DNA of 64,000 bases from the IMG/VR virus record IMGVR_UViG_3300013120_000738, positions 62,001-126,000 of that record; one strand, given 5' to 3'. Positions 924 to 39,008 of the stretch are shown in pieces. A program made the translations under genes and the position numbers. Position 1 is the stretch's first letter, and each line of letters begins with the position of its first letter. The notes under the pieces are model-generated. The model was not told the origin of the DNA, made no database searches, and worked only from the letters and a program-made list of their open reading frames with translations.

Positions 924-1484
924 ATGACCCTCAATAAAGATGAAAAATTGTTGTGCGAAGCTATCGATTCGATGCTTCAACAAGATGCTAAACTCGGGCT
1001 AGCTATGCACGACAAAGAGCATGAAAAAACAGGGTCAGCCGAACGAGGTTATGAATATCTACATGGTCAAATAGACGAAATGTTTGCCGTCAAAGCGGCC
1101 GAATTAGACCATGCTGATGGGGTATGTCAAGCATTCAAGAAAGTACACAACTACAAATATGTTGACGACCCAACATTCAAGACAGCCATGGAAAAAGAGA
1201 TGGTCGCACAAGCTATACCGGAAGCAGATAGAAGTAAAGCACTAGAATTCGTACCAGCAATAATTAACGAACTCAAGAAAGAACAATCAGAATGGGCAGA
1301 GAAGGATAGTGGTTTCAACCCGGCTCTCGACGAGATAAGAGAAGCAAGCCAACCAGAACAACCACTAGACTTCCAAATCGAGGATGTAGATGGCTGGCCT
1401 AAAGACGCCAACGTCGAATGGGATGAAGGCGACGCCAGTCCAGGAAAGACCCCATCCGATTCAGAACACTCGATGCCAAAATGA
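924..1484 (+). CDS. Hypothetical protein with acidic C-terminus
   Basis: 186-aa ORF preceded by AAGGAG Shine-Dalgarno. Confidence 0.8.
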   Translation: MTLNKDEKLLCEAIDSMLQQDAKLGLAMHDKEHEKTGSAERGYEYLHGQIDEMFAVKAAELDHADGVCQAFKKVHNYKYVDDPTFKTAMEKEMVAQAIPEADRSKALEFVPAIINELKKEQSEWAEKDSGFNPALDEIREASQPEQPLDFQIEDVDGWPKDANVEWDEGDASPGKTPSDSEHSMPK

Positions 1485-1720
1485 AGCTAAAACAGATAAA
1501 TGAAAATCTGGTGATGCAACAGCTTCGCGGGCAATTAATGACATCAGGACCATATTTCGCCCGCCCTAATCTCCATCTACAAGGTACTACACAAGCATCA
1601 GGACATGATTCAGGAAGCAGATCAGCCGGACTAACATTCCTACCAACAGCTATACCACATAAACCAAGATATAGAAATTATCTAGGATTCGAGAAAAGAC
1701 CTGGTACTATCAGACTCTAA
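1481..1720 (+). CDS. Hypothetical protein
   Basis: ATGA overlap with the upstream gene; MKLKQINE-type start. Confidence 0.65.
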   Translation: MKLKQINENLVMQQLRGQLMTSGPYFARPNLHLQGTTQASGHDSGSRSAGLTFLPTAIPHKPRYRNYLGFEKRPGTIRL

Positions 1721-2481
1721 TATACTGATATCTGCCCAGCACCTTTGCACTTCGGGCAAGTATCACCATTCACTTCACAATCGCCCCTACATACAGGACA
1801 ATTAGTCATTGTCTTAGCATATCCTTGCCTAGCAAAATCAGGAGTTCTATCCTGCATAGAATCATCAGCCATCCTCTTAAATCTATCCTGTAACTTCCTA
1901 TCATCCTCAGACTTTATAATTGCAACACGAGTAGTGCCTGTACCATCTACCCGTTTCCTCTGAATAGCCAACGGTTGTCCCTCTCTGCCCTCTACGACGC
2001 CCATTTGTACAGCACCATCACGGACATCATCCGGTAACTTATCCTGCAAATCAGAACTCTGTAGACTCTGATGAGATTCTACAGGACCCAAATCAGTAGC
2101 CCCGCCTACACTGACCATTCCAGGAGCACCATCTATCCTTGATGTCGATATTACATCTGGCGAATTAGGGTCTAATGCATCAGGTGCCTTCTTGGATTCA
2201 GTCACTGGTGGCTTTTGCTGTGGAGTAAGTGCAGATGGTTGAACCACAGCTACACCACCAGGAGTATCACTAACAGATAGCCCAAGTTTTTTGGCCATCT
2301 CCATAACTTCCTTGATCTTCTCCTGCTTGGCCTCATATGCCTCCCTAGCACTCTTAATAGTGGCTTCCTCTGCATGTTCGTCACAAATGTCAACAGTGAC
2401 CTTAGTACCATCCTCTAAGGTTACACTTAATGATGTGTTCAGATTTTCTGAACTCTCGCAATACACGCATTGTTTAGACAT
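1717..2481 (-). CDS. Zinc-finger protein (N-terminal CxxC..CxxH, C-terminal DnaJ-like CxxCxG repeats)
   Basis: CVYC...CDEH; CPVCRG...CPKCKGAG. Confidence 0.75.
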   Translation of the reverse strand: MSKQCVYCESSENLNTSLSVTLEDGTKVTVDICDEHAEEATIKSAREAYEAKQEKIKEVMEMAKKLGLSVSDTPGGVAVVQPSALTPQQKPPVTESKKAPDALDPNSPDVISTSRIDGAPGMVSVGGATDLGPVESHQSLQSSDLQDKLPDDVRDGAVQMGVVEGREGQPLAIQRKRVDGTGTTRVAIIKSEDDRKLQDRFKRMADDSMQDRTPDFARQGYAKTMTNCPVCRGDCEVNGDTCPKCKGAGQISVY

Positions 2482-3025
2482 CTTTAAATTCCTTCAAGAT
2501 TGTTTTTATTTCATCTAGACTATGATTACTCTTTGCGAAATTAACCCATTTACAAACCAATTGTATATTACCTTTTATATATCCTTTCTCAGAATCAATT
2601 CGATCAATACTCATACTCCTAAGATCACGCGTCTTATGGCTCATAGGCATATTAGTTATAGCACATCTACCATCTTGTAACTGCCACAGAGATCTTAAAA
2701 ATTCAACATCAATATTATGAATTTTTCCTCTTTTGGTTGCAGATCTTTTTGATCTATTAACAAGTTCTGCTAAAAAGAAGTTTAACGTCTCGCGATACTT
2801 CCTCCTCTTTTGTTTATTATTTCTAGCGTATTCTCTATGATAGGTACGTTCAGCTTTTTTGTCTACCTTACCTTCTTTACGCCTCCTACGTCTAGCAGCA
2901 AGAATTTTGTCTTTATTCTTATGATATCTATCATTAGTATACTTGCGAAAACATTCAGGACACAAATGAGTAGACTTGTGCTTAGGTACATATTGTACAC
3001 CACATTTACACGTTTTAGTTCCCAT
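2474..3025 (-). CDS. Free-standing HNH-superfamily homing endonuclease-like protein
   Basis: QDGRCAIT...SIDRIDSEKGYIKGNIQLVCKWVNFAK motif of phage homing endonucleases; basic Zn-binding N-terminus. Confidence 0.8.
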   Translation of the reverse strand: MGTKTCKCGVQYVPKHKSTHLCPECFRKYTNDRYHKNKDKILAARRRRRKEGKVDKKAERTYHREYARNNKQKRRKYRETLNFFLAELVNRSKRSATKRGKIHNIDVEFLRSLWQLQDGRCAITNMPMSHKTRDLRSMSIDRIDSEKGYIKGNIQLVCKWVNFAKSNHSLDEIKTILKEFKDV

Positions 3026-27915: not shown

Positions 27916-28683
27916 TTAGGCTCCCCCCTACCTTTATATCTTTAAAGAATTTTTAAAGTTTAAGTAGGATTTAGCGATCTTGTCACTAAAGAATCACAGA
28001 TAAGCACCATCATCTAATGCCAAGGGGAAGCCATGCGATGGTCGAAATCTGTGTCCACTCTCCCGCCACCGTCATCTCCCTCCCAGGAGACCGGCCGCTC
28101 TATCAGTCTTTGGTGCCTCGGGAGCTTCGAGTTACTTTATTCTCTCATTAAATAGGAAGTCTTGATTAGGCAGATGGGTAGCAACGGGTTCTCCATCTTG
28201 GCTATAGCCTTCACCCTGATTGTTCGTGGCGCATACACGTGGTCGCCGTGCCAAAGCCCGTTGGTCCGGCCCCCGTCAATCATTTATCAAGACCTCCAAG
28301 ACTGCCAGTGTTTCCAAGTCATGCTCTGTCAACATTTCATTTTCAGCGATTCAATAATTCATTTTCAGCGATTTCAACTACCTCGTGAGCACTTTCTTGT
28401 CGGTACACTGGTTAACGTTGGTAAAGAGATTAAAGCCTACGGTCACTCGATCGGTGGCTGAGAGGTTCCACCCCTCATAAACCAGGTGTTCCTTTTAGAT
28501 CGTACATCATGTACTACGGCTAGGGCAGGGGACGCACCTTCGGTGACACCCAGACACAAGGTCATAAAAACACCCTCAAAGAACCTAAATGCTCTAGCCA
28601 ATCGAGCTTAATAGAATACGAACTGTGGCAAATAGGGCCACTATGTTTGGCAAATGCCAAAGCAGTACCAACACTGCCGAGAA
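27916..28683. ncRNA. Candidate large structured non-coding RNA or structured DNA element (unclassified)
   Basis: Longest intergenic gap in the window, visibly GC-richer than the flanks, with many nested complementary pairs (28155-28166/28286-28297, 27995-28001/28047-28053, 28417-28423/28666-28672, 28446-28464/28592-28606). Confidence 0.55.
28336..28373 (+). repeat. Tandem 16-bp direct repeat TTCATTTTCAGCGATT x2
   Basis: Copies at 28336-28351 and 28358-28373 (22-bp period). Confidence 0.9.
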
Positions 28684-31363: not shown

Positions 31364-31922
31364 TCGCTCCAAAAATATATTGGAGGATACCATGTTCCAA
31401 GTAGAATTATTATCAATGGGCGATGGACAATCATACGAACATGCTACCGTCTGCGAAGAAGAGGACTTAGATAGGCTTAATATACCAAAACCATTTGAAA
31501 AATGGACAGCATGTTTCTTCGCTAATGGTAAATGTATTGTTTGTCATCACTATAAAATAGCAGTGCTCCACCTCGACAGGCATCAGAGATCTGGCCCAGG
31601 ATGTGTCCATGTCGAGAGGGTATTATTTGCTGGCGATATTAGTTATGCACCAGCACTAATCTTACCAGTAGAGGTCTGGCGATCACATGGCGTACCAGAA
31701 TATTTTGTGAAGGAATATGGATTTGAGGGGCAATTTGTTATCAGTTGTCAACAAGGGACTATAATTACTGCCGACCAGAATGTAGCTAGTATAATCGTAC
31801 AATACCCTAAACACCAAGGTATAACCAGAAGTAAGCACGTTCAAGAATCAGTCGGGAAGACAGTTAAACAAACTGCTGTACCAAACACAGTTCACAGCAA
31901 GATAGAACGGCGTAAGAGATAA
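31353..31922 (+). CDS. Hypothetical protein
   Basis: Likely start ATG 31392 after GGAGG. Confidence 0.7.
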   Translation: MWHNRSKNILEDTMFQVELLSMGDGQSYEHATVCEEEDLDRLNIPKPFEKWTACFFANGKCIVCHHYKIAVLHLDRHQRSGPGCVHVERVLFAGDISYAPALILPVEVWRSHGVPEYFVKEYGFEGQFVISCQQGTIITADQNVASIIVQYPKHQGITRSKHVQESVGKTVKQTAVPNTVHSKIERRKR

Positions 31923-32395
31923 TGCCATATTATAGACGCCCTGAAAAACGACGAGGAACTTGCTTATGGGGTCGTGCAATTGCACTTGATAGACACGGTG
32001 TATATGATGTTGATATGAATACTGAATCAGATGAAGATAATTGGTATCTTAATGATACTGATACTGACTATCCAGACCCGTATTTAGAATCCTTGCAAGT
32101 TCTCGCTCCTATTCTACAACAGAATGATGCTACTGATGCAGAAATAATACTTACATATGAAGTTTATGGAACTGGCCCAGGAGAACCACTTGATTATCAA
32201 TTAGAAGATTATCGTCTTAACATATATCGCCAAGATAAAGCCCAAATGTGCTACAGATTATCAAAAGATGTTGCTGAAGATATAGCAGGCGAATTTGATG
32301 ATGAAATATATGATTCAATAAGAGATACAGAATTACATTATGAAGATATACTTAAGATAGCAGCAATTGTTACGGAAGATCCAAATGCCACATGA
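31922..32395 (+). CDS. Acidic hypothetical protein, tandem paralog A
   Basis: Shares KRRGT..W, HGVY, WYL.D.DTDYPDPY..SLQ.LAPI, LHYEDILK.AA.VTED with the next gene. Confidence 0.85.
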   Translation: MPYYRRPEKRRGTCLWGRAIALDRHGVYDVDMNTESDEDNWYLNDTDTDYPDPYLESLQVLAPILQQNDATDAEIILTYEVYGTGPGEPLDYQLEDYRLNIYRQDKAQMCYRLSKDVAEDIAGEFDDEIYDSIRDTELHYEDILKIAAIVTEDPNAT

Positions 32396-32912
32396 ACGCT
32401 CAGGAAAACGAAGAGGAACCGCCATATGGGCTCTTTATATTGGGCTTGATGAACATGGCGTATACATGAAGATGGATACTGAGCAAGCAGAAAACAGCTG
32501 GTACCTTGATGACGCCGACACAGACTACCCAGATCCATATTATGATTCTTTACAAGCCCTCGCCCCTATTATGCGACGAAACGAAACTCAAGATGCACAA
32601 TTAACACTCACATTTGAGGTTGAAGGGAAACACCCACTGCCTAATCCAAGAGAACCACTCCATTATGAATTAGAAGAATATTGTCTCTTCGACATAGGAG
32701 TTGATCCCCGGTCATATGATGTCCCCGTGAGATCAGATGGTAGTATCCCCGACGATCTCTTAGAAGATGAGGAGATCCCAATCCCTAGAGAAATAGCTGA
32801 AATTATAGCAGATGAATTTGCAGAAGAGATATATGATATAGTAAAAGATACACACCTACATTATGAAGATATACTTAAGGTAGCAGCAACTGTTACGGAA
32901 GACCTCATCTAA
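32385..32912 (+). CDS. Acidic hypothetical protein, tandem paralog B
   Basis: As above; start MPHER inferred from the paralog. Confidence 0.85.
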   Translation: MPHERSGKRRGTAIWALYIGLDEHGVYMKMDTEQAENSWYLDDADTDYPDPYYDSLQALAPIMRRNETQDAQLTLTFEVEGKHPLPNPREPLHYELEEYCLFDIGVDPRSYDVPVRSDGSIPDDLLEDEEIPIPREIAEIIADEFAEEIYDIVKDTHLHYEDILKVAATVTEDLI

Positions 32913-32940: not shown

Positions 32941-34788
32941 TTGAAGCGTGGAGGTATGCATATGAAATCAAATCCAATAACAGTAGAACCAGACCTACCT
33001 GAAGATGATGGCTTCTCAGTCCACGCCTGGATGCATCTCGACACAGACACAATCGACGAAAGCTTCCCTATGGAATCGTATAGGGAAGGTCAAAAAGATG
33101 CTATCGAATTTGCCGTGGAAGAATTCAATAAAGGAAAACGAATAGTAGTCCTAGAAGCACCGACAGGTAGTGGCAAATCCGCTATTGCTATGACAATAGC
33201 CGAAATGGTACACGACTCATACTACCTAACCATCACCAAACAATTACAAGACCAACTAACGCGCGACTTCAGCGACGTCGTAGAATTGAAGGGTAGAAAT
33301 GCATATCCCTGCACATACTATGGACGCGAAGGACAGAAGTTAGTCGATAGAAAACTACTAAGCACGGAAGAACTCAATGAGTTGAAAGAACAATATCCGA
33401 ATTGTGCTACAGGATTCTGCAAAACCAAACTAAACAGGACTTCCCCCACACAAAAGGCCTATAGGTGTGTACGGTGCTTCACAGTAGAAGGACCACTCAA
33501 GGACGGGAAAATGAGTGGGGAATTAGAAGTATTACCACCTGGATATCAATATAGTGCTTGTCCATATTACGAACAAGTGTATAAAGCACTTGCGGCTCGA
33601 AAAATCACAATGAACTTTTCGAGTTTCCTCTTCCAAACCACCATGACCAAGAGATTTGATAGGGGTGCACGAGATTTACTAATCATTGATGAAGCACATA
33701 ATATTGAATCTCAAATCCTTGACTTCGTATCCTTCTCCATAAGTGACTTGCACTTGCAGAGATATGGAGTATTCATACCAGAACTTGCTACACCGTTTGA
33801 TTATTATATCTGGTTTGAAGAAGCAAAAGTAGCCAAATTGCTTGAAGATGCTATAAAACAGAGCAGAAAAGATGAGAAGCCCAAGCTCGAAGATGAATTG
33901 ATGCGGATATCTAATAAATTCATCATATTTATGAAGCGCATTAGGGCTGCTGGTACCGATACCGCAAACAAGGAATGGGTGTCGGAATATGGTGAGAAGG
34001 GACGTACCACAACACATAGATCAGTCACTATCAAACCTATCTTCGCCCACGAATTCACAGAAGGACTGTTACTCAAGCATGGTGTAAGAATACTCTTGAT
34101 GAGTGCCACTATATTAGATGTAAATGTATTAGCCGGATCTCTTGGTATAGACAAGTCCGAAATCGCTGCCTATAGAATGAAAAATCGCTTCCCCGTCAAG
34201 AATAGACCGATATATTTGGATACTGTGGCGAAAATGACGGGCGGCAAGGGTAATATGGTTAATTGGGCACCCCAGTTGGTAGACGGTGTTAATGGTATAG
34301 TCAGGAATCATGAGGGGGAGAAAGGGATAATACATACGCATAATTTCGCTATTATGGACCATCTCCTAACCAGATGTGATCCAGACGTCTCCGATAGGAT
34401 GCTATGCCAAAGAGACTTCAGAAACAAGACCTTAATGTTGGAGGAACATGCTAATAGGGATGATACAATAATTGTTGCTCCAGCTATGCATGAGGGTATA
34501 GACCTCACAGATGAACTTAGTAGGTTCCAGATTATATGTAAGGTCCCATACGCGAATTTCTTCGAGAGTCCTCAATTAGCGCGTAGGGTTGAGCTAGATA
34601 GACGTTACTATACGTGGATGACAGCACTTAAACTGGTCCAGAGTTATGGTCGCAGTATTCGAAGTGAGAATGATCATGCTGTGACATACATTCTAGATGA
34701 GGCTATATATCGCTTCCTTAGAGAAGCAGACGGCATGCTGCCAGGATGGTTTAAAGAAGCTATCAAAGATTCTCAGACTGATAAATAG
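32941..34788 (+). CDS. DinG/XPD-family SF2 helicase
   Basis: Q motif (REGQ), EAPTGSGKS, LKGRNAYPC, ACPYY, IIDEAH, MSAT, EGID, KVPY, QSYGRSIR..D; likely start 32962. Confidence 0.93.
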   Translation: MKRGGMHMKSNPITVEPDLPEDDGFSVHAWMHLDTDTIDESFPMESYREGQKDAIEFAVEEFNKGKRIVVLEAPTGSGKSAIAMTIAEMVHDSYYLTITKQLQDQLTRDFSDVVELKGRNAYPCTYYGREGQKLVDRKLLSTEELNELKEQYPNCATGFCKTKLNRTSPTQKAYRCVRCFTVEGPLKDGKMSGELEVLPPGYQYSACPYYEQVYKALAARKITMNFSSFLFQTTMTKRFDRGARDLLIIDEAHNIESQILDFVSFSISDLHLQRYGVFIPELATPFDYYIWFEEAKVAKLLEDAIKQSRKDEKPKLEDELMRISNKFIIFMKRIRAAGTDTANKEWVSEYGEKGRTTTHRSVTIKPIFAHEFTEGLLLKHGVRILLMSATILDVNVLAGSLGIDKSEIAAYRMKNRFPVKNRPIYLDTVAKMTGGKGNMVNWAPQLVDGVNGIVRNHEGEKGIIHTHNFAIMDHLLTRCDPDVSDRMLCQRDFRNKTLMLEEHANRDDTIIVAPAMHEGIDLTDELSRFQIICKVPYANFFESPQLARRVELDRRYYTWMTALKLVQSYGRSIRSENDHAVTYILDEAIYRFLREADGMLPGWFKEAIKDSQTDK

Positions 34789-34839: not shown

Positions 34840-36657
34840 ATGTTAGAACTCAAATCCGTCGAGTGGCGTAATTTCTTATCATACGGCGACTACGACACCC
34901 GCCTAGATCTAAGTAGTCTTGGCCAATGCTTGATTACTGGCGAGGTCATAGATGATAGTAAAGACATCTATGATGACGCCAACCCTATGTCTATCCGCAA
35001 ATCAAATGGGGCAGGGAAGTCAACCATACCCAGTGTAATCCAATGGGTGCTATTCGGACGGACAATGCACTCAGCAAACCCCGGCTCGAGAATAGTAAAT
35101 TGGTTCACCGGCAAGGACTGCAGAGCCCGTGTGGAATTCAAAAGTGGTGATAGTATTACCAGGATACGGACTACCACGGGCAACACAGAGTTGATATATG
35201 TCAAGGATGGTAACGAAGAGAAAACCACTGCAAACACCCTATCAACGGCCGTCAACCAACAAGCCCAACTAGCTAGACACTTCAATCTGGATTGGGATTT
35301 CTTCTGCGGCTCCGCATTCTTCAACCAGTATAGCAAACCATGGCTAGAAATGGCCGACCAATCACGGCGAAAGGCCATAGAGAGGGCACTACATGTTGAT
35401 AGGTATCTCTATAGGGCTAAGGTAGCAAAAGGGAAGCATACTGCACTAGAATCAACAATCGAGACAGATAAACAGCGTATTGCCAATATTGAAATAGAAA
35501 TCACTAGATTAGAATCAGTCATAGAAAGACTGAAAGTATCCTCCAGCGAATTTGAACAGGGTAGACAGAAGCGAAAGCAAGAACTTCTGTTACTAGCCGT
35601 AGAAGAGAAGAAAAAGAGAGATGCGATAAAGGTACCAGATCGTGACGCACTACGTAAGAAATGGGCCGTAGTAGAGCAAATCCAAGGAAAACTCAATGAA
35701 CTAGAATCCCAAGAACTGCAACTCTTCAGGGCCATCAGTAAGCTAGAGGGTGACGCCAGATCAGTCCAAGAAAGGATTAATAAATGGGAACAGAAATCTG
35801 GCAAGATGTGTACTAATTGTGAACAGACTATTGCAACAGATCATGTCTCAGCAAGGGTTGAACCACTTCAAACACGATTAGCCCAGATAATGCACCAGAT
35901 AGAGGAATCGAACGAGGAGAGAACTAAATTAAAGAGTACTATCGAACATGTAAAACAAGCTGTGGCAGAGAAGAAACCAGAACACACTGTCAAAGAGGCA
36001 ATAAGAATACATGATGAGTATTGCAGACATGATAGGGAGATGAAACGTCTAAAGACCGAAGCAACTAAAGAAGAGAAAAACCCTCATAAGAGATCCCTAC
36101 AAGAAGCTGAAGAAGGTCTTAAAAAGCAAGAAAAGCTCTTAGTAGGACTACGAGAGAAAGTTGAACAAGACAATTTCTTAGCCCGCCATTATTTCTATAT
36201 CTATAAGGCCTACAATGATCGGAATAAGATCAAGAGTTTTGCCTTCCAGGATCATATTCCCTTTATCAATACTAGGTTAAAGCATTATCTCGATGTTTTT
36301 GGCCTCGATATTGAGGTTTCATTGACATCAACACTTGGTATATCTAGTAATCTATGGGGATATGAATTTGAGTCTGGCGGGGAGCGGAAGAGGACTGATG
36401 TGGCGTTTATGTTGGCGATGTTTGATTTTCATGAGCATATGTATGGTCGCCAGTGTAACGTATTAGTTCTTGATGAGGTTGATGGTCGCTTAGATGATGA
36501 TGGTATAGATTCTCTGATTAATATAATTAAGAGCGATCTTGCTTCTAGGGCTGAATCAATCCTGATCATTTCTCATAAGGATCATATGCAGGATACGTTC
36601 CCGCGTGAGATTAGGGTTGTGAGGACTGAGAGGCTTTCCCATCTGAAGGCGGCATGA
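34840..36657 (+). CDS. sbcC: Rad50/SbcC-like ATPase (gp46-like)
   Basis: NFLSYG, NGAGKST, coiled coils with CTNC zinc hook, SGGE signature, LVLDE, ISH. Confidence 0.94.
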   Translation: MLELKSVEWRNFLSYGDYDTRLDLSSLGQCLITGEVIDDSKDIYDDANPMSIRKSNGAGKSTIPSVIQWVLFGRTMHSANPGSRIVNWFTGKDCRARVEFKSGDSITRIRTTTGNTELIYVKDGNEEKTTANTLSTAVNQQAQLARHFNLDWDFFCGSAFFNQYSKPWLEMADQSRRKAIERALHVDRYLYRAKVAKGKHTALESTIETDKQRIANIEIEITRLESVIERLKVSSSEFEQGRQKRKQELLLLAVEEKKKRDAIKVPDRDALRKKWAVVEQIQGKLNELESQELQLFRAISKLEGDARSVQERINKWEQKSGKMCTNCEQTIATDHVSARVEPLQTRLAQIMHQIEESNEERTKLKSTIEHVKQAVAEKKPEHTVKEAIRIHDEYCRHDREMKRLKTEATKEEKNPHKRSLQEAEEGLKKQEKLLVGLREKVEQDNFLARHYFYIYKAYNDRNKIKSFAFQDHIPFINTRLKHYLDVFGLDIEVSLTSTLGISSNLWGYEFESGGERKRTDVAFMLAMFDFHEHMYGRQCNVLVLDEVDGRLDDDGIDSLINIIKSDLASRAESILIISHKDHMQDTFPREIRVVRTERLSHLKAA

Positions 36658-37085
36658 TGTCTGGACCTCTTTTCAAGTTTGAAAGAATTTGTATCCCGAA
36701 AATAAAGAGACCATTTCCACCGTTAGATATTCGTGAGCTGTTTGGAATGAATCGTGAAAATCATGAGGAAATTCTGAGGGCGGTCTTGCAGATCTTAGCT
36801 AACAGTACTCATAGGTTTAGGTGGGTGCGTGGATGGTTTCATGATCATGCATTGATCTTAGAGGTAAATTCGAATCCTGATAAGTTTTGTGATAGGAGAT
36901 ATAGACTTATAATAAGGGACGGTATGATACTTTGTACCCATAGGCGATTAGATCAATATGGCAGCTTTACTAAAGAGATTGTTGATTGTTTTGAACTTGC
37001 CAACCCGAATAGTTTGGTATCTCTAGAGAAGATTATATTTAGTCACCTATCTAACAACTGGTGTGCCGCAGAAACCAGCACATAG
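36654..37085 (+). CDS. Hypothetical protein
   Basis: ATGA coupling to sbcC; C-terminal ELANPNS motif similar to other small ORFs in the window. Confidence 0.65.
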   Translation: MMSGPLFKFERICIPKIKRPFPPLDIRELFGMNRENHEEILRAVLQILANSTHRFRWVRGWFHDHALILEVNSNPDKFCDRRYRLIIRDGMILCTHRRLDQYGSFTKEIVDCFELANPNSLVSLEKIIFSHLSNNWCAAETST

Positions 37086-37093
37086 AAGATTCT

Positions 37094-37129
37094 TAGGGTT
37101 TGAAAAGCGACTAGGGACCATCAGACTCT
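37094..37129 (+). repeat. 36-bp direct repeat, copy 1
   Basis: TAGGGTTTGAAAAGCGACTAGGGACCATCAGACTCT, identical to 37761-37796. Confidence 0.95.
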
Positions 37130-37711
37130 AATAATACGCACAAGTTCTGAGGGCTCAACAGGCCTCAATAATAAAGCAACTTGTGACCATTTATTTTTAA
37201 GATATTGTGATAAACGCTGGCAAAGCACTACACAATCAATAGTAACTGGTCCATCGCAATGGTGGATAAGATCTCCATACTCACTTAACAAACTCGCATT
37301 AACTTCCCCACTCTTTGAAGATTTAACTCGTTGTAAGAAACACTTGAGATATTGTTCAGCAAATTTAGCCGGTATACCATGCTTACTCAATACTTTTCCC
37401 ACATGCTCAATAGTAGACGATGGAGTTATACCACAATCGGCACCATACTCTTCTGTTTGCCAGTCTAGTAGCGTGGTAATAATAGGTACATTCTCAGCTA
37501 CTAATTCTTCGTGTGGTATATTAAATTCAAGAATATAATTATGACTACCAGCATAGGCGGTGGCTGCAGCACGATCTCCATACGTGAAATATCTGCCCCA
37601 GTAATCGCCGGATTTTATGGCTTCTACGACCTCTACTTCAGTAGCAGTAGTGGTTTCGCCTCGATATAAGTGAGTCGAAGAATCTGACTCTGTGATAGAC
37701 CATAATCGCAT
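37121..37711 (-). CDS. ADP-ribosyltransferase-fold-like protein
   Basis: LYRG...GRYFT....AATAYA....ILEF.IP pattern seen in ART-fold phage proteins. Confidence 0.5.
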   Translation of the reverse strand: MRLWSITESDSSTHLYRGETTTATEVEVVEAIKSGDYWGRYFTYGDRAAATAYAGSHNYILEFNIPHEELVAENVPIITTLLDWQTEEYGADCGITPSSTIEHVGKVLSKHGIPAKFAEQYLKCFLQRVKSSKSGEVNASLLSEYGDLIHHCDGPVTIDCVVLCQRLSQYLKNKWSQVALLLRPVEPSELVRIIRV

Positions 37712-37731
37712 ATCATATGTTTTCGCTGACG

Positions 37732-37796
37732 TTGAAAAGCGACTTAGTACAATCAGACTCTAGGGTTTGAAAAGCGACTAGGGACCATCAGACTCT
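37732..37796 (+). repeat. Degenerate repeat copy (37732-37760) abutting exact copy 2 (37761-37796)
   Basis: TTGAAAAGCGACTtagtacaATCAGACTC (4 mismatches in 29 bp) directly followed by the exact 36-mer. Confidence 0.93.
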
Positions 37797-37960
37797 GAGA
37801 TTATTGCTGTCATACCATCCATCAGAGATCTGCCAGCATCCATATCACCCGTCAATTCAAGAGCATACCATGGGTCCATTCCTCTAGAAACCAAATCTTG
37901 GTATGATGCTTCCCTAACATTCTTGGATTTACAGGCAACACAGGTCCCATATTCCGCCAT
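37778..37960 (-). CDS. Small hypothetical protein, possibly truncated by the repeat
   Basis: CVAC motif; TAG stop lies inside the repeat. Confidence 0.5.
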   Translation of the reverse strand: MAEYGTCVACKSKNVREASYQDLVSRGMDPWYALELTGDMDAGRSLMDGMTAIISESDGP

Positions 37961-37971
37961 TTGGTCGCAGT

Positions 37972-38243
37972 CTAGACATATTCGCCGCCGCTAAGTCTAT
38001 TAAGTTTTCTTTCAGTACATCTTGGTTTAATATCGATACCATGTATAGTTGCTTCAGGGCCAAAATATCTCTGCCATAATAGCAAAGAACCACCAAATTT
38101 GACACCAATTTCTAGGACATGTATTGGTTTGCCACGAAAACGACTAAAATGCCGATCATATATTTCGAAATAATGTTTCCATTTATTACTTCTGTTTCTA
38201 CGATCTCAATTTTCGTAGAAGAATTTTTCTATATCATTAGCAT
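37972..38243 (-). pseudogene. Truncated class I SAM methyltransferase
   Basis: Manual translation NDIEKFFYEN*DRRNRSNKWKHYFEIYDRHFSRFRGKPIHVLEIGVKFGGSLLLWQRYFGPEATIHGIDI; in-frame TGA at 38206-38208, out-of-frame ATG, C-terminal half missing. Confidence 0.85.
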
Positions 38244-38257
38244 ATTTTCTAGGTTTT

Positions 38258-38797
38258 CTAGGTGCCATATCCAGATCTCGTGAAGAATTGTTGTGGCATG
38301 CCCATCATAGAATTCCGAACTGCCATTGGTTCTTCAAAGGATCTGGCGACAGATGGTCTGAGGTCGATATATCCGGCATCATGTTGAGATAGTACTCTAG
38401 TTATGAATGTAATGATTTTTCTAGGTGTCGTTTGTCTTCTAGCGTTTGAATAACTCTCTGGTATTACTACTACTCCATTACTTATCTGTCTAGCAAGATC
38501 CTTCAAATCATTATGGAATGTATCACCAAGATACATCCTCTGATTGCCAAGTACGAATAGGTTCCACCCTAGTGCCGCTTTGCTCTGCATCAAGTCCAAA
38601 TCTTCGACATATGGAACTATTTCTACTTTATTTACAAGGGGTGGAATAAATAGAGGTAGATCCTGAACTAGGGCTGGATATAATTGGCGGTCGAAACTTT
38701 CTACAAAGCCCTTTTCCAGAAAGTACTTAATGAGAAGTCGCCTGACCACCTCTGTATTAGAGGCATGTTTGATGGCGTCGATAGTGTGTGAGTCCAT
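38258..38797 (-). CDS. Hypothetical protein
   Basis: 179-aa ORF with GAGG SD. Confidence 0.75.
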   Translation of the reverse strand: MDSHTIDAIKHASNTEVVRRLLIKYFLEKGFVESFDRQLYPALVQDLPLFIPPLVNKVEIVPYVEDLDLMQSKAALGWNLFVLGNQRMYLGDTFHNDLKDLARQISNGVVVIPESYSNARRQTTPRKIITFITRVLSQHDAGYIDLRPSVARSFEEPMAVRNSMMGMPQQFFTRSGYGT

Positions 38798-38822
38798 GAA
38801 TCTACCTCATTAGTATATTTTC

Positions 38823-39008
38823 ATGATGGGTACCACAATGAAAGTTGAGAAAAAAGGCAAGAAATTAGTGATAGAGGTTGACTTAAAAGAAGCAACCCCA
38901 TCCAAATCTGGAAAAACATTAATTATCGCCCATGAGTCAGGAAAAACTCCAATAAAGGTGGATGGCAAACCAGTTAGTATTAACGTGATTGCTACTATAC
39001 CAAAATGA
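38823..39008 (+). CDS. Small hypothetical protein (PSKSGKT motif)
   Basis: LVIEVDL....PSKSGKT.IIA...G. Confidence 0.75.
   Translation: MMGTTMKVEKKGKKLVIEVDLKEATPSKSGKTLIIAHESGKTPIKVDGKPVSINVIATIPK

Follow-up and report, generated by a model that had tools for sequence, protein, structure and literature searches.

A 36-nucleotide direct repeat around a putative ADP-ribosyltransferase gene of an uncultured marine phage is probably a duplicated gene tail on a recently transplanted block

Do two identical 36-nucleotide repeats on either side of a small phage gene mark the ends of a mobile cassette, or did they travel with the gene as part of something larger? The question is raised by a stretch of 64,000 nucleotides (here, the window) that corresponds to bases 62001 to 126000 of a 227,725-bp IMG/VR virus record, estimated to be 63% complete; the metagenomic runs that hold the stretch are marine. 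An earlier note, made from the letters alone, had interpreted the locus as a recombination-driven hotspot of gene cassettes, akin to integron att sites or to the shuffling repeats of the T4 family. Our own reading, to which we assign a probability of roughly 0.6, is that the repeat (R) is a duplicated gene tail sitting on a recently transplanted block of DNA, that is, ordinary phage mosaicism and not an integron-like cassette system. R is the 3' end of a small gene, referred to below as the tail gene. Its copies and the cargo gene between them are as follows.

37094-37129 (+): R1, exact 36-mer, at the end of a 3' fragment of the tail gene; stop TAA at 37129-37131
37121-37711 (-): cargo gene, 196 aa, putative ADP-ribosyltransferase (ART) fold with a helical insertion (predicted model, structure matches)
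37726-37761 (+): R3, diverged copy, 27/36 identical to R, no gaps
37761-37796 (+): R2, exact 36-mer; a TGA stop is next in the frame of the tail gene

The identical 36-mers reported at 37094 and 37761 (TAGGGTTTGAAAAGCGACTAGGGACCATCAGACTCT) were confirmed, and no exact match of this length appeared in 100 shuffles. The three copies, all within 37094-37796, are the only ones in the 227,725-bp record, where R1 and R2 form the second-longest exact direct repeat. The longest (47 nt, at C1:164165 and C1:187062, 22.9 kb apart) lies outside the window. Exact-pattern scans for R in viral_contigs and metagenome_contigs returned nothing, with the proviso that near-identical records may lie outside the scanned sets. 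Genome-wide, there were no other cassette-flanking repeats of the R type; a 114-nt pair at 32266/32789 was considered as one and rejected, since it belongs to a pair of paralogues in tandem (157 and 181 aa, window 31922-32912, just upstream of the helicase) whose 3' ends share these 114 nt at 82% identity. A tandem 22-nt repeat (two copies, 91% identity) was also seen at window 28329-28372.

The last T of R3 is the first T of R2 (spacing of 35 nt), and in the frame of the tail gene every copy is followed by a stop: TAA after R1, TAG after R3 (which reads ..VEKRLSTIRL, the stop being formed at the junction with R2), and TGA after R2. On the opposite strand, both adjacent ORFs do stop inside a repeat, as had been noticed before. 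R1 supplies the last two codons and the TGA (37121-37123) of the 196-aa ORF, which ends in ...IIRV, while R2 supplies ESDGP and the TAG (37778-37780) of a 60-aa ORF that ends in ...SESDGP; the two ORFs read R in different frames. R has imperfect 10-nt inverted ends. RNA folds of both strands were not better than those of shuffled sequences (z from -1.5 to +0.7), neither was a promoter and terminator scan, and a search of R against Rfam gave no match.

What R is becomes clear from its plus strand: the twelve codons read there (LGFEKRLGTIRL, then a stop) are the final ones of a small gene, R1 being in frame with ...LTTGVPQKPAHRRFLGFEKRLGTIRL, followed by TAA. This phage gene, of which R is the 3' end, is conserved within one set of marine jumbo phages and 78 to 80 aa long, and the C-terminus ..LG.E.R.G(T/A)IRL was found in 14 of 14 cluster representatives of its product. 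The window has a full-length version of its own, far from the repeats.

1481-1720 (+): resident full-length tail gene, 79 aa, ending in YLGFEKRPGTIRL and a stop; unoccupied homologue of the donor locus described below
1717-2481 (-): convergent 254-aa neighbour, whose stop overlaps that of the tail gene by 2 nt (the ORF ranges overlap by 4 nt)

Compared base by base, the resident tail (1683-1718) is identical to R at 27 of 36 positions (76% over 38 nt by alignment), and the slot behind it, at 1718-1720, is unoccupied. In most relatives, the tail gene and the convergent gene likewise abut, with called genes overlapping by 4 to 6 nt in L009 to L013 and L027, while L028 to L030 have a spacer of ca. 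185 nt. At 12 such loci, from about six distinct phages, R itself was absent, and no second copy of the own tail was found with up to 10 to 11 mismatches in 36 allowed; a search for the tail gene in viral_contigs found no relatives. The tails of the relatives vary at synonymous sites (ATC/ATT/ATA, AGA/CGT/AGG, and CTC/CTT/TTA), and therefore it is the peptide that is conserved, not a DNA site.

Even where the tail is not duplicated, what follows the tail gene varies. For instance, the slot holds a CxxC zinc-ribbon ORF in L017 (3740-3979, minus strand) and a small ORF on the same strand in L008 (998-1120, plus strand). In the window, a 183-aa ORF (2474-3025, minus strand) beside the unoccupied slot starts with a zinc ribbon and carries, towards its C-terminus, a ..SIDRIDSEKGYIKGNIQLVCKWVNFAKSN motif reminiscent of HNH-type endonucleases, with no significant match in Pfam or NCBIfam.

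The only near-identical relative of the cargo protein is found on a 2,822-bp ENA contig from another study (L006), and the comparison with this contig delimits what has moved.

37043-37983 (unstranded): transplanted block, 941 bp, 99.5% identical to L006 (from the alignment with L006)
37051-37131 (+): 3' fragment of the donor's tail gene, 26 codons plus stop (LTTGVPQKPAHRRFLGFEKRLGTIRL and the stop), by comparison with the donor's 80-aa gene
37778-37983 (-): 72-aa CxxC..CxxC gene, here a copy that lacks 13 nt at its 5' end (by comparison with L006)

In L006, a 236-aa gene is followed by an additional gene of 114 aa and by the tail gene, here full length (80 aa) and ending in R1; next come, in this order, the 196-aa gene in convergent orientation, R3, R2, the complete 72-aa CxxC..CxxC gene, and a homologue of the 254-aa gene. 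The extra 114-aa gene (L006:1739-2080, minus strand) is missing from the window, a second insertion difference at the same module. Because the first 13 nt and the start of the zinc-ribbon gene are missing in the window, the ORF called there (37778-37960, minus strand, 60 aa) starts after the first CxxC. Window positions 37066 to 37983 differ from L006 at one of 918 nt (37531), whereas the flanks of the block in L006 match a different part of the window, 956-2319, at only 70 to 79%. The mobile unit is therefore ca. 0.92 to 0.94 kb long and has its ends outside the repeats: the right breakpoint is exactly at 37983|37984 and the left one between 37042 and 37066, with the block extending between 28 and about 51 nt beyond R1 on the left and 187 nt beyond R2 on the right. 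Thus, the earlier suspicion that something mobile lies here was well founded, the same block being present at two different loci, while the proposal that the repeats bound the mobile unit is contradicted by the one transfer that can be reconstructed. The idea of a hotspot largely fails as well: R occurs only here in the genome, and, but for the single mismatch, the repeats enclose the same content in L006, although the block does lie at a different locus there.

At the landing site, the block has damaged or altered the genes on both of its sides.

36654-37085 (+): 143-aa ORFan, downstream of the SbcC-like gene
37975-38268 (-): what is left of a class I SAM O-methyltransferase gene, interrupted by an in-frame stop (38206-38208) and cut off at its 3' end by the block

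The last ca. 14 codons of the ORFan come from the transplanted tail-gene fragment, read in another frame. On the other side, the broken methyltransferase that had been recognized just upstream of the cargo proved to be real. The minus strand to the right of 37983 encodes ...KWKHYFEIYDRHFSRFRGKPIHVLEIGVKFGGSLLLWQRYFGPEATIHGIDIKPRC..., and positions 37975-38205 match the SAM-binding start of TylE/MycE-type O-methyltransferases (PDB 8ia9, E value of 3e-6; PDB 3ssm, E value of 8e-6). Viral homologues of 184 aa are up to 67% identical, and compared with an intact one in L019, about 100 C-terminal residues have been lost at 37983/37984. The homology can be followed to about 37993, and the final codons of the frame (37975-37983) already belong to the block. 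Upstream of the repeat region are a DEAD_2-type helicase (32941-34788) and an SbcC-like ATPase (34840-36657), and the phage has its own RecA gene just upstream of the start of the window. The genes after SbcC are quite different among relatives with 36 to 53% identical SbcC, and the 179-aa neighbour (38258-38797) changes its place and strand among them; therefore, this is a plastic region. A blastn search of window 36000-39000 against GenBank phages gave no match.

From these data, we infer an order of events and a mechanism for the original duplication. In an L006-type relative, two accessory genes, the 196-aa ART-like gene and the 72-aa zinc-ribbon gene, would have become wedged between the tail gene and its convergent neighbour. 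The insertions would have left extra tails behind, R1 being the working one and R3 and R2 the displaced ones, and the 3' end of each accessory gene would have been fused to a tail copy whose antisense strand provides the stop codon of that gene. Under the simplest reading of the sequences, each R copy would once have been a working tail, displaced later when the tail gene took up a fragment that carried a tail together with cargo, by homologous recombination at the gene side and by illegitimate recombination at the opposite side. R is flanked by two similar short sequences, AGATTCT and AGACTCT, which may have helped the joining. A Campbell-type insertion of a circle with one R would give the same picture. 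Then, very recently, a block of ca. 0.92 to 0.94 kb, consisting of 26 tail-gene codons, R1, the ART-like gene, R3, R2, and the 72-aa gene minus 13 nt, would have been copied by illegitimate, non-site-specific recombination between co-occurring phages, landing in the plastic region downstream of the SbcC-like gene and truncating a methyltransferase gene that was probably already decaying. In the window genome, the repeats would therefore be passengers.

Several details bear on this order. In run X1, a Logan contig continues from 37983 into an L006-type context and window-type contigs are present too, and therefore both phages co-occur. That the very recent copy went from an L006-type locus into the phage of the window is inferred from the completeness of the genes only. 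The third copy, which had been described as eroded and abutting the second, is indeed a diverged copy of R. However, its last 27 nt show four differences from R, of which three (CTT, ACA, and the third base of GGT) occur in natural alleles; therefore, R3 looks like the tail of another allele and not like a decayed R. In P0025, a homologue of the 72-aa gene (78% identical), the sequence diverges exactly at the start of R2 and is 9 residues longer, and thus the joint between R2 and the 72-aa gene is secondary. For the same reason, we dropped an ancestral overlap, in which two convergent genes that overlapped could both be preserved only if R was duplicated, the C-terminus of P0025 being different and longer.

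In the Hendrix-type model, phage morons and mosaicism arise by illegitimate recombination. The locus resembles them in having a single accessory gene in a variable slot between conserved genes, a gene that is near-identical between phages whose flanks are 20 to 30% diverged, and joints at arbitrary points that truncate the neighbours. Unlike a moron, the insert carries duplicated coding tails of a neighbour that terminate the inserted genes and has no detectable promoter or terminator of its own. We consider this a clean, datable case of accessory genes moving from one uncultured marine jumbo phage to another: one 0.9-kb block is shared by two unrelated loci in co-occurring relatives, both breakpoints are placed within about 25 bases, and newcomer genes can be terminated by the borrowed antisense of a neighbour's tail.

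Some features fit poorly with tails that were passively left behind. The tail portions in R2 and R3 have almost the same starting point, and the identity between R1 and R2 covers exactly 36 nt and breaks off sharply at both ends, a pattern more suggestive of site specificity than of random illegitimate joining. Integrative elements are known to insert at tRNA genes or gene 3' ends, carrying a replacement end with them, and R could be such an attachment-type site. A 667-bp mini-cassette lacking a recombinase of its own (R, the ART-like gene, and R3) would have entered Campbell style at the 3' end of the tail gene, bringing a replacement tail; it could excise as a circle, and R3 would be the scar of an earlier occupant. 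As with attL and attR, the exact direct repeats are the 3' end of a conserved gene and flank the insert, the target gene is intact in L006, and every copy of R is followed by a stop in the target frame; the imperfect inverted ends of R would also suit a recombination site, and so would a second direct repeat flanking a homologue of the cargo in L007. In run X2, among Logan contigs of four runs examined, one contig runs from 37704-37760 across R and on into 37130-37204, the joint expected of a circle or of a tandem copy. However, this joint is a single contig of 168 nt with a depth of 2.6 and 36 ambiguous letters, and R, at 36 nt, is longer than the 31-mer of the assembly graph, so that a low-depth graph can give such a path without any circle. 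The record has no match to phage integrase (PF00589), resolvase, or GIY-YIG families (a recombinase could lie in the missing part of the 63% complete genome) and a single weak HNH match outside the window. Furthermore, the documented move did not use R as its ends, neither a second cargo nor reuse of the tail was seen at the 12 loci of relatives, there is no R-like sequence beside the distant cargo homologues in L007 and L016, the synonymous variation of the tail leaves no conserved DNA site, and a unit of 667 bp with one gene is unlike known attL/attR elements. We regard an attachment-type site as unlikely, and a dedicated recombination site at R as a minority possibility. Slightly bolder, and distinctly unlikely, would be the view that mini-cassettes without a recombinase repeatedly land in the tail of the 80-aa gene; they would enter by 36-bp Campbell recombination through the phage RecA, supply a replacement tail that lets the target gene survive, stack up displaced tails (R3 and R2), and form a 667-bp circle during infection, spreading an anti-host ADP-ribosyltransferase among jumbo phages.

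As the same X2 contig illustrates, a k=31 graph can be led astray by a repeat of 36 nt, and metagenome assemblies can collapse or misjoin at repeats, which raises the question of whether the repeat or the position of the block is an artefact or a chimera. The arrangement is the same on 11 contigs, including the IMG/VR record and two JGI contigs from different samples, L014 and L015 (one of them 289,811 bp long), that are 100% identical over 3 kb. It was found again in the ENA contig of another phage, and the L006-type junction recurs in a Logan contig. Being present in independent assemblies, it is not an artefact of one assembly, and we hold this explanation to be close to negligible. Hardly more probable is that R works as a regulatory cassette of the PeSL type, in which recombination between copies of a promoter plus terminator would shuffle genes. 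In T4-type phages, PeSLs lie between genes as units of promoter plus stem-loop, occur in many copies, and are also known to form mini-circles (Arbiol et al. 2010, PMC2839356). The likeness lies in short direct repeats around a nonessential gene in a hyperplastic region, and it extends to the mini-circles; R1 x R2 recombination would give a small circle. Still, R is the coding sequence of a conserved gene, its three copies are confined to one place, and the scans, folds, and Rfam search described above revealed no promoter or stem-loop signal, so that we consider the T4 analogy of the earlier note already largely refuted. Its comparison with integrons fares no better: there is a small, apparently promoterless single-gene unit beside a repeat, but no IntI-type tyrosine recombinase and no serine recombinase in the record, no attC-like imperfect palindrome with a conserved core, and no array, and R1 and R2 are identical to each other and not cassette specific. 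The expectation that R1 and R2, by recombining with each other, would delete the gene is supported, and under our preferred reading of R as a displaced coding tail, the copies would still be usable as 36-bp substrates for RecA-type recombination of the phage, leading to the loss of the ART-like gene. No new recombination system is revealed here unless circles or empty sites are shown.

The cargo itself belongs to a very small family, with 8 representatives at E values up to 0.001 among 1.84 billion proteins. Its invariant residues include R17 (in Y/F-R-G), G39, Y41 (in GRYFTY), E62, E73, D153, and G154. The AlphaFold (AF2) model has a pLDDT of 86.8 and a pTM of 0.84, and in an exhaustive VIA-align search, ca. 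30 of the top 50 matches were ART-fold proteins, with Z scores of 7.3 to 3.5, modest values (maximum of 7.3) in a range where, as the tool warns, a match can reflect a common arrangement. The best match was KptA/Tpt1 (Z score of 7.3), then came TreX, PARP16, CARDS toxin, Scabin, and TreTu, and further ones were pertussis S1, LT, Arr, DarT, and diphtheria toxin; residues 74 to 175 match helical bundles. Atlas searches returned AcrIF11, Arr, DarT/PARP, DRAT, ART-HYD1, ART-PolyVal, and Scabin-like clusters, while Foldseek against PDB gave nothing significant and Pfam, PHROGs, and NCBIfam gave no match. Thus, the description of the gene as ART-like holds at the level of the fold, as predicted by the model, and finds no counterpart among the sequence families of these three databases.

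We propose a putative split beta-sheet ART fold, a call that relies on the consistency of the match list. In the model, the first three strands carry the invariant R17 (YRG), GRYFTY, and E62, and an invariant Arg on the first strand followed by invariant Glu residues is a likeness to small ART-fold proteins (KptA/Tpt1, TreX/TreTu, Arr, AcrIF11, Scabin, and DarT). Compared with these proteins, the phage-borne family has a helical insertion of ca. 100 residues and no sequence-family match, and its catalytic residues are putative. By analogy with phage ARTs, the cargo, a putative enzyme, may modify a host or defence component, which would make it a candidate host-takeover or counter-defence enzyme. 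One of its homologues, 51% identical and located on a 1,138-bp Logan contig (L007), is flanked by a 26-nt direct repeat (355-380 and 1105-1130, 16 nt exact, spacing of 750) whose sequence is unrelated to R and which could be either a phage promoter motif or another cassette boundary.
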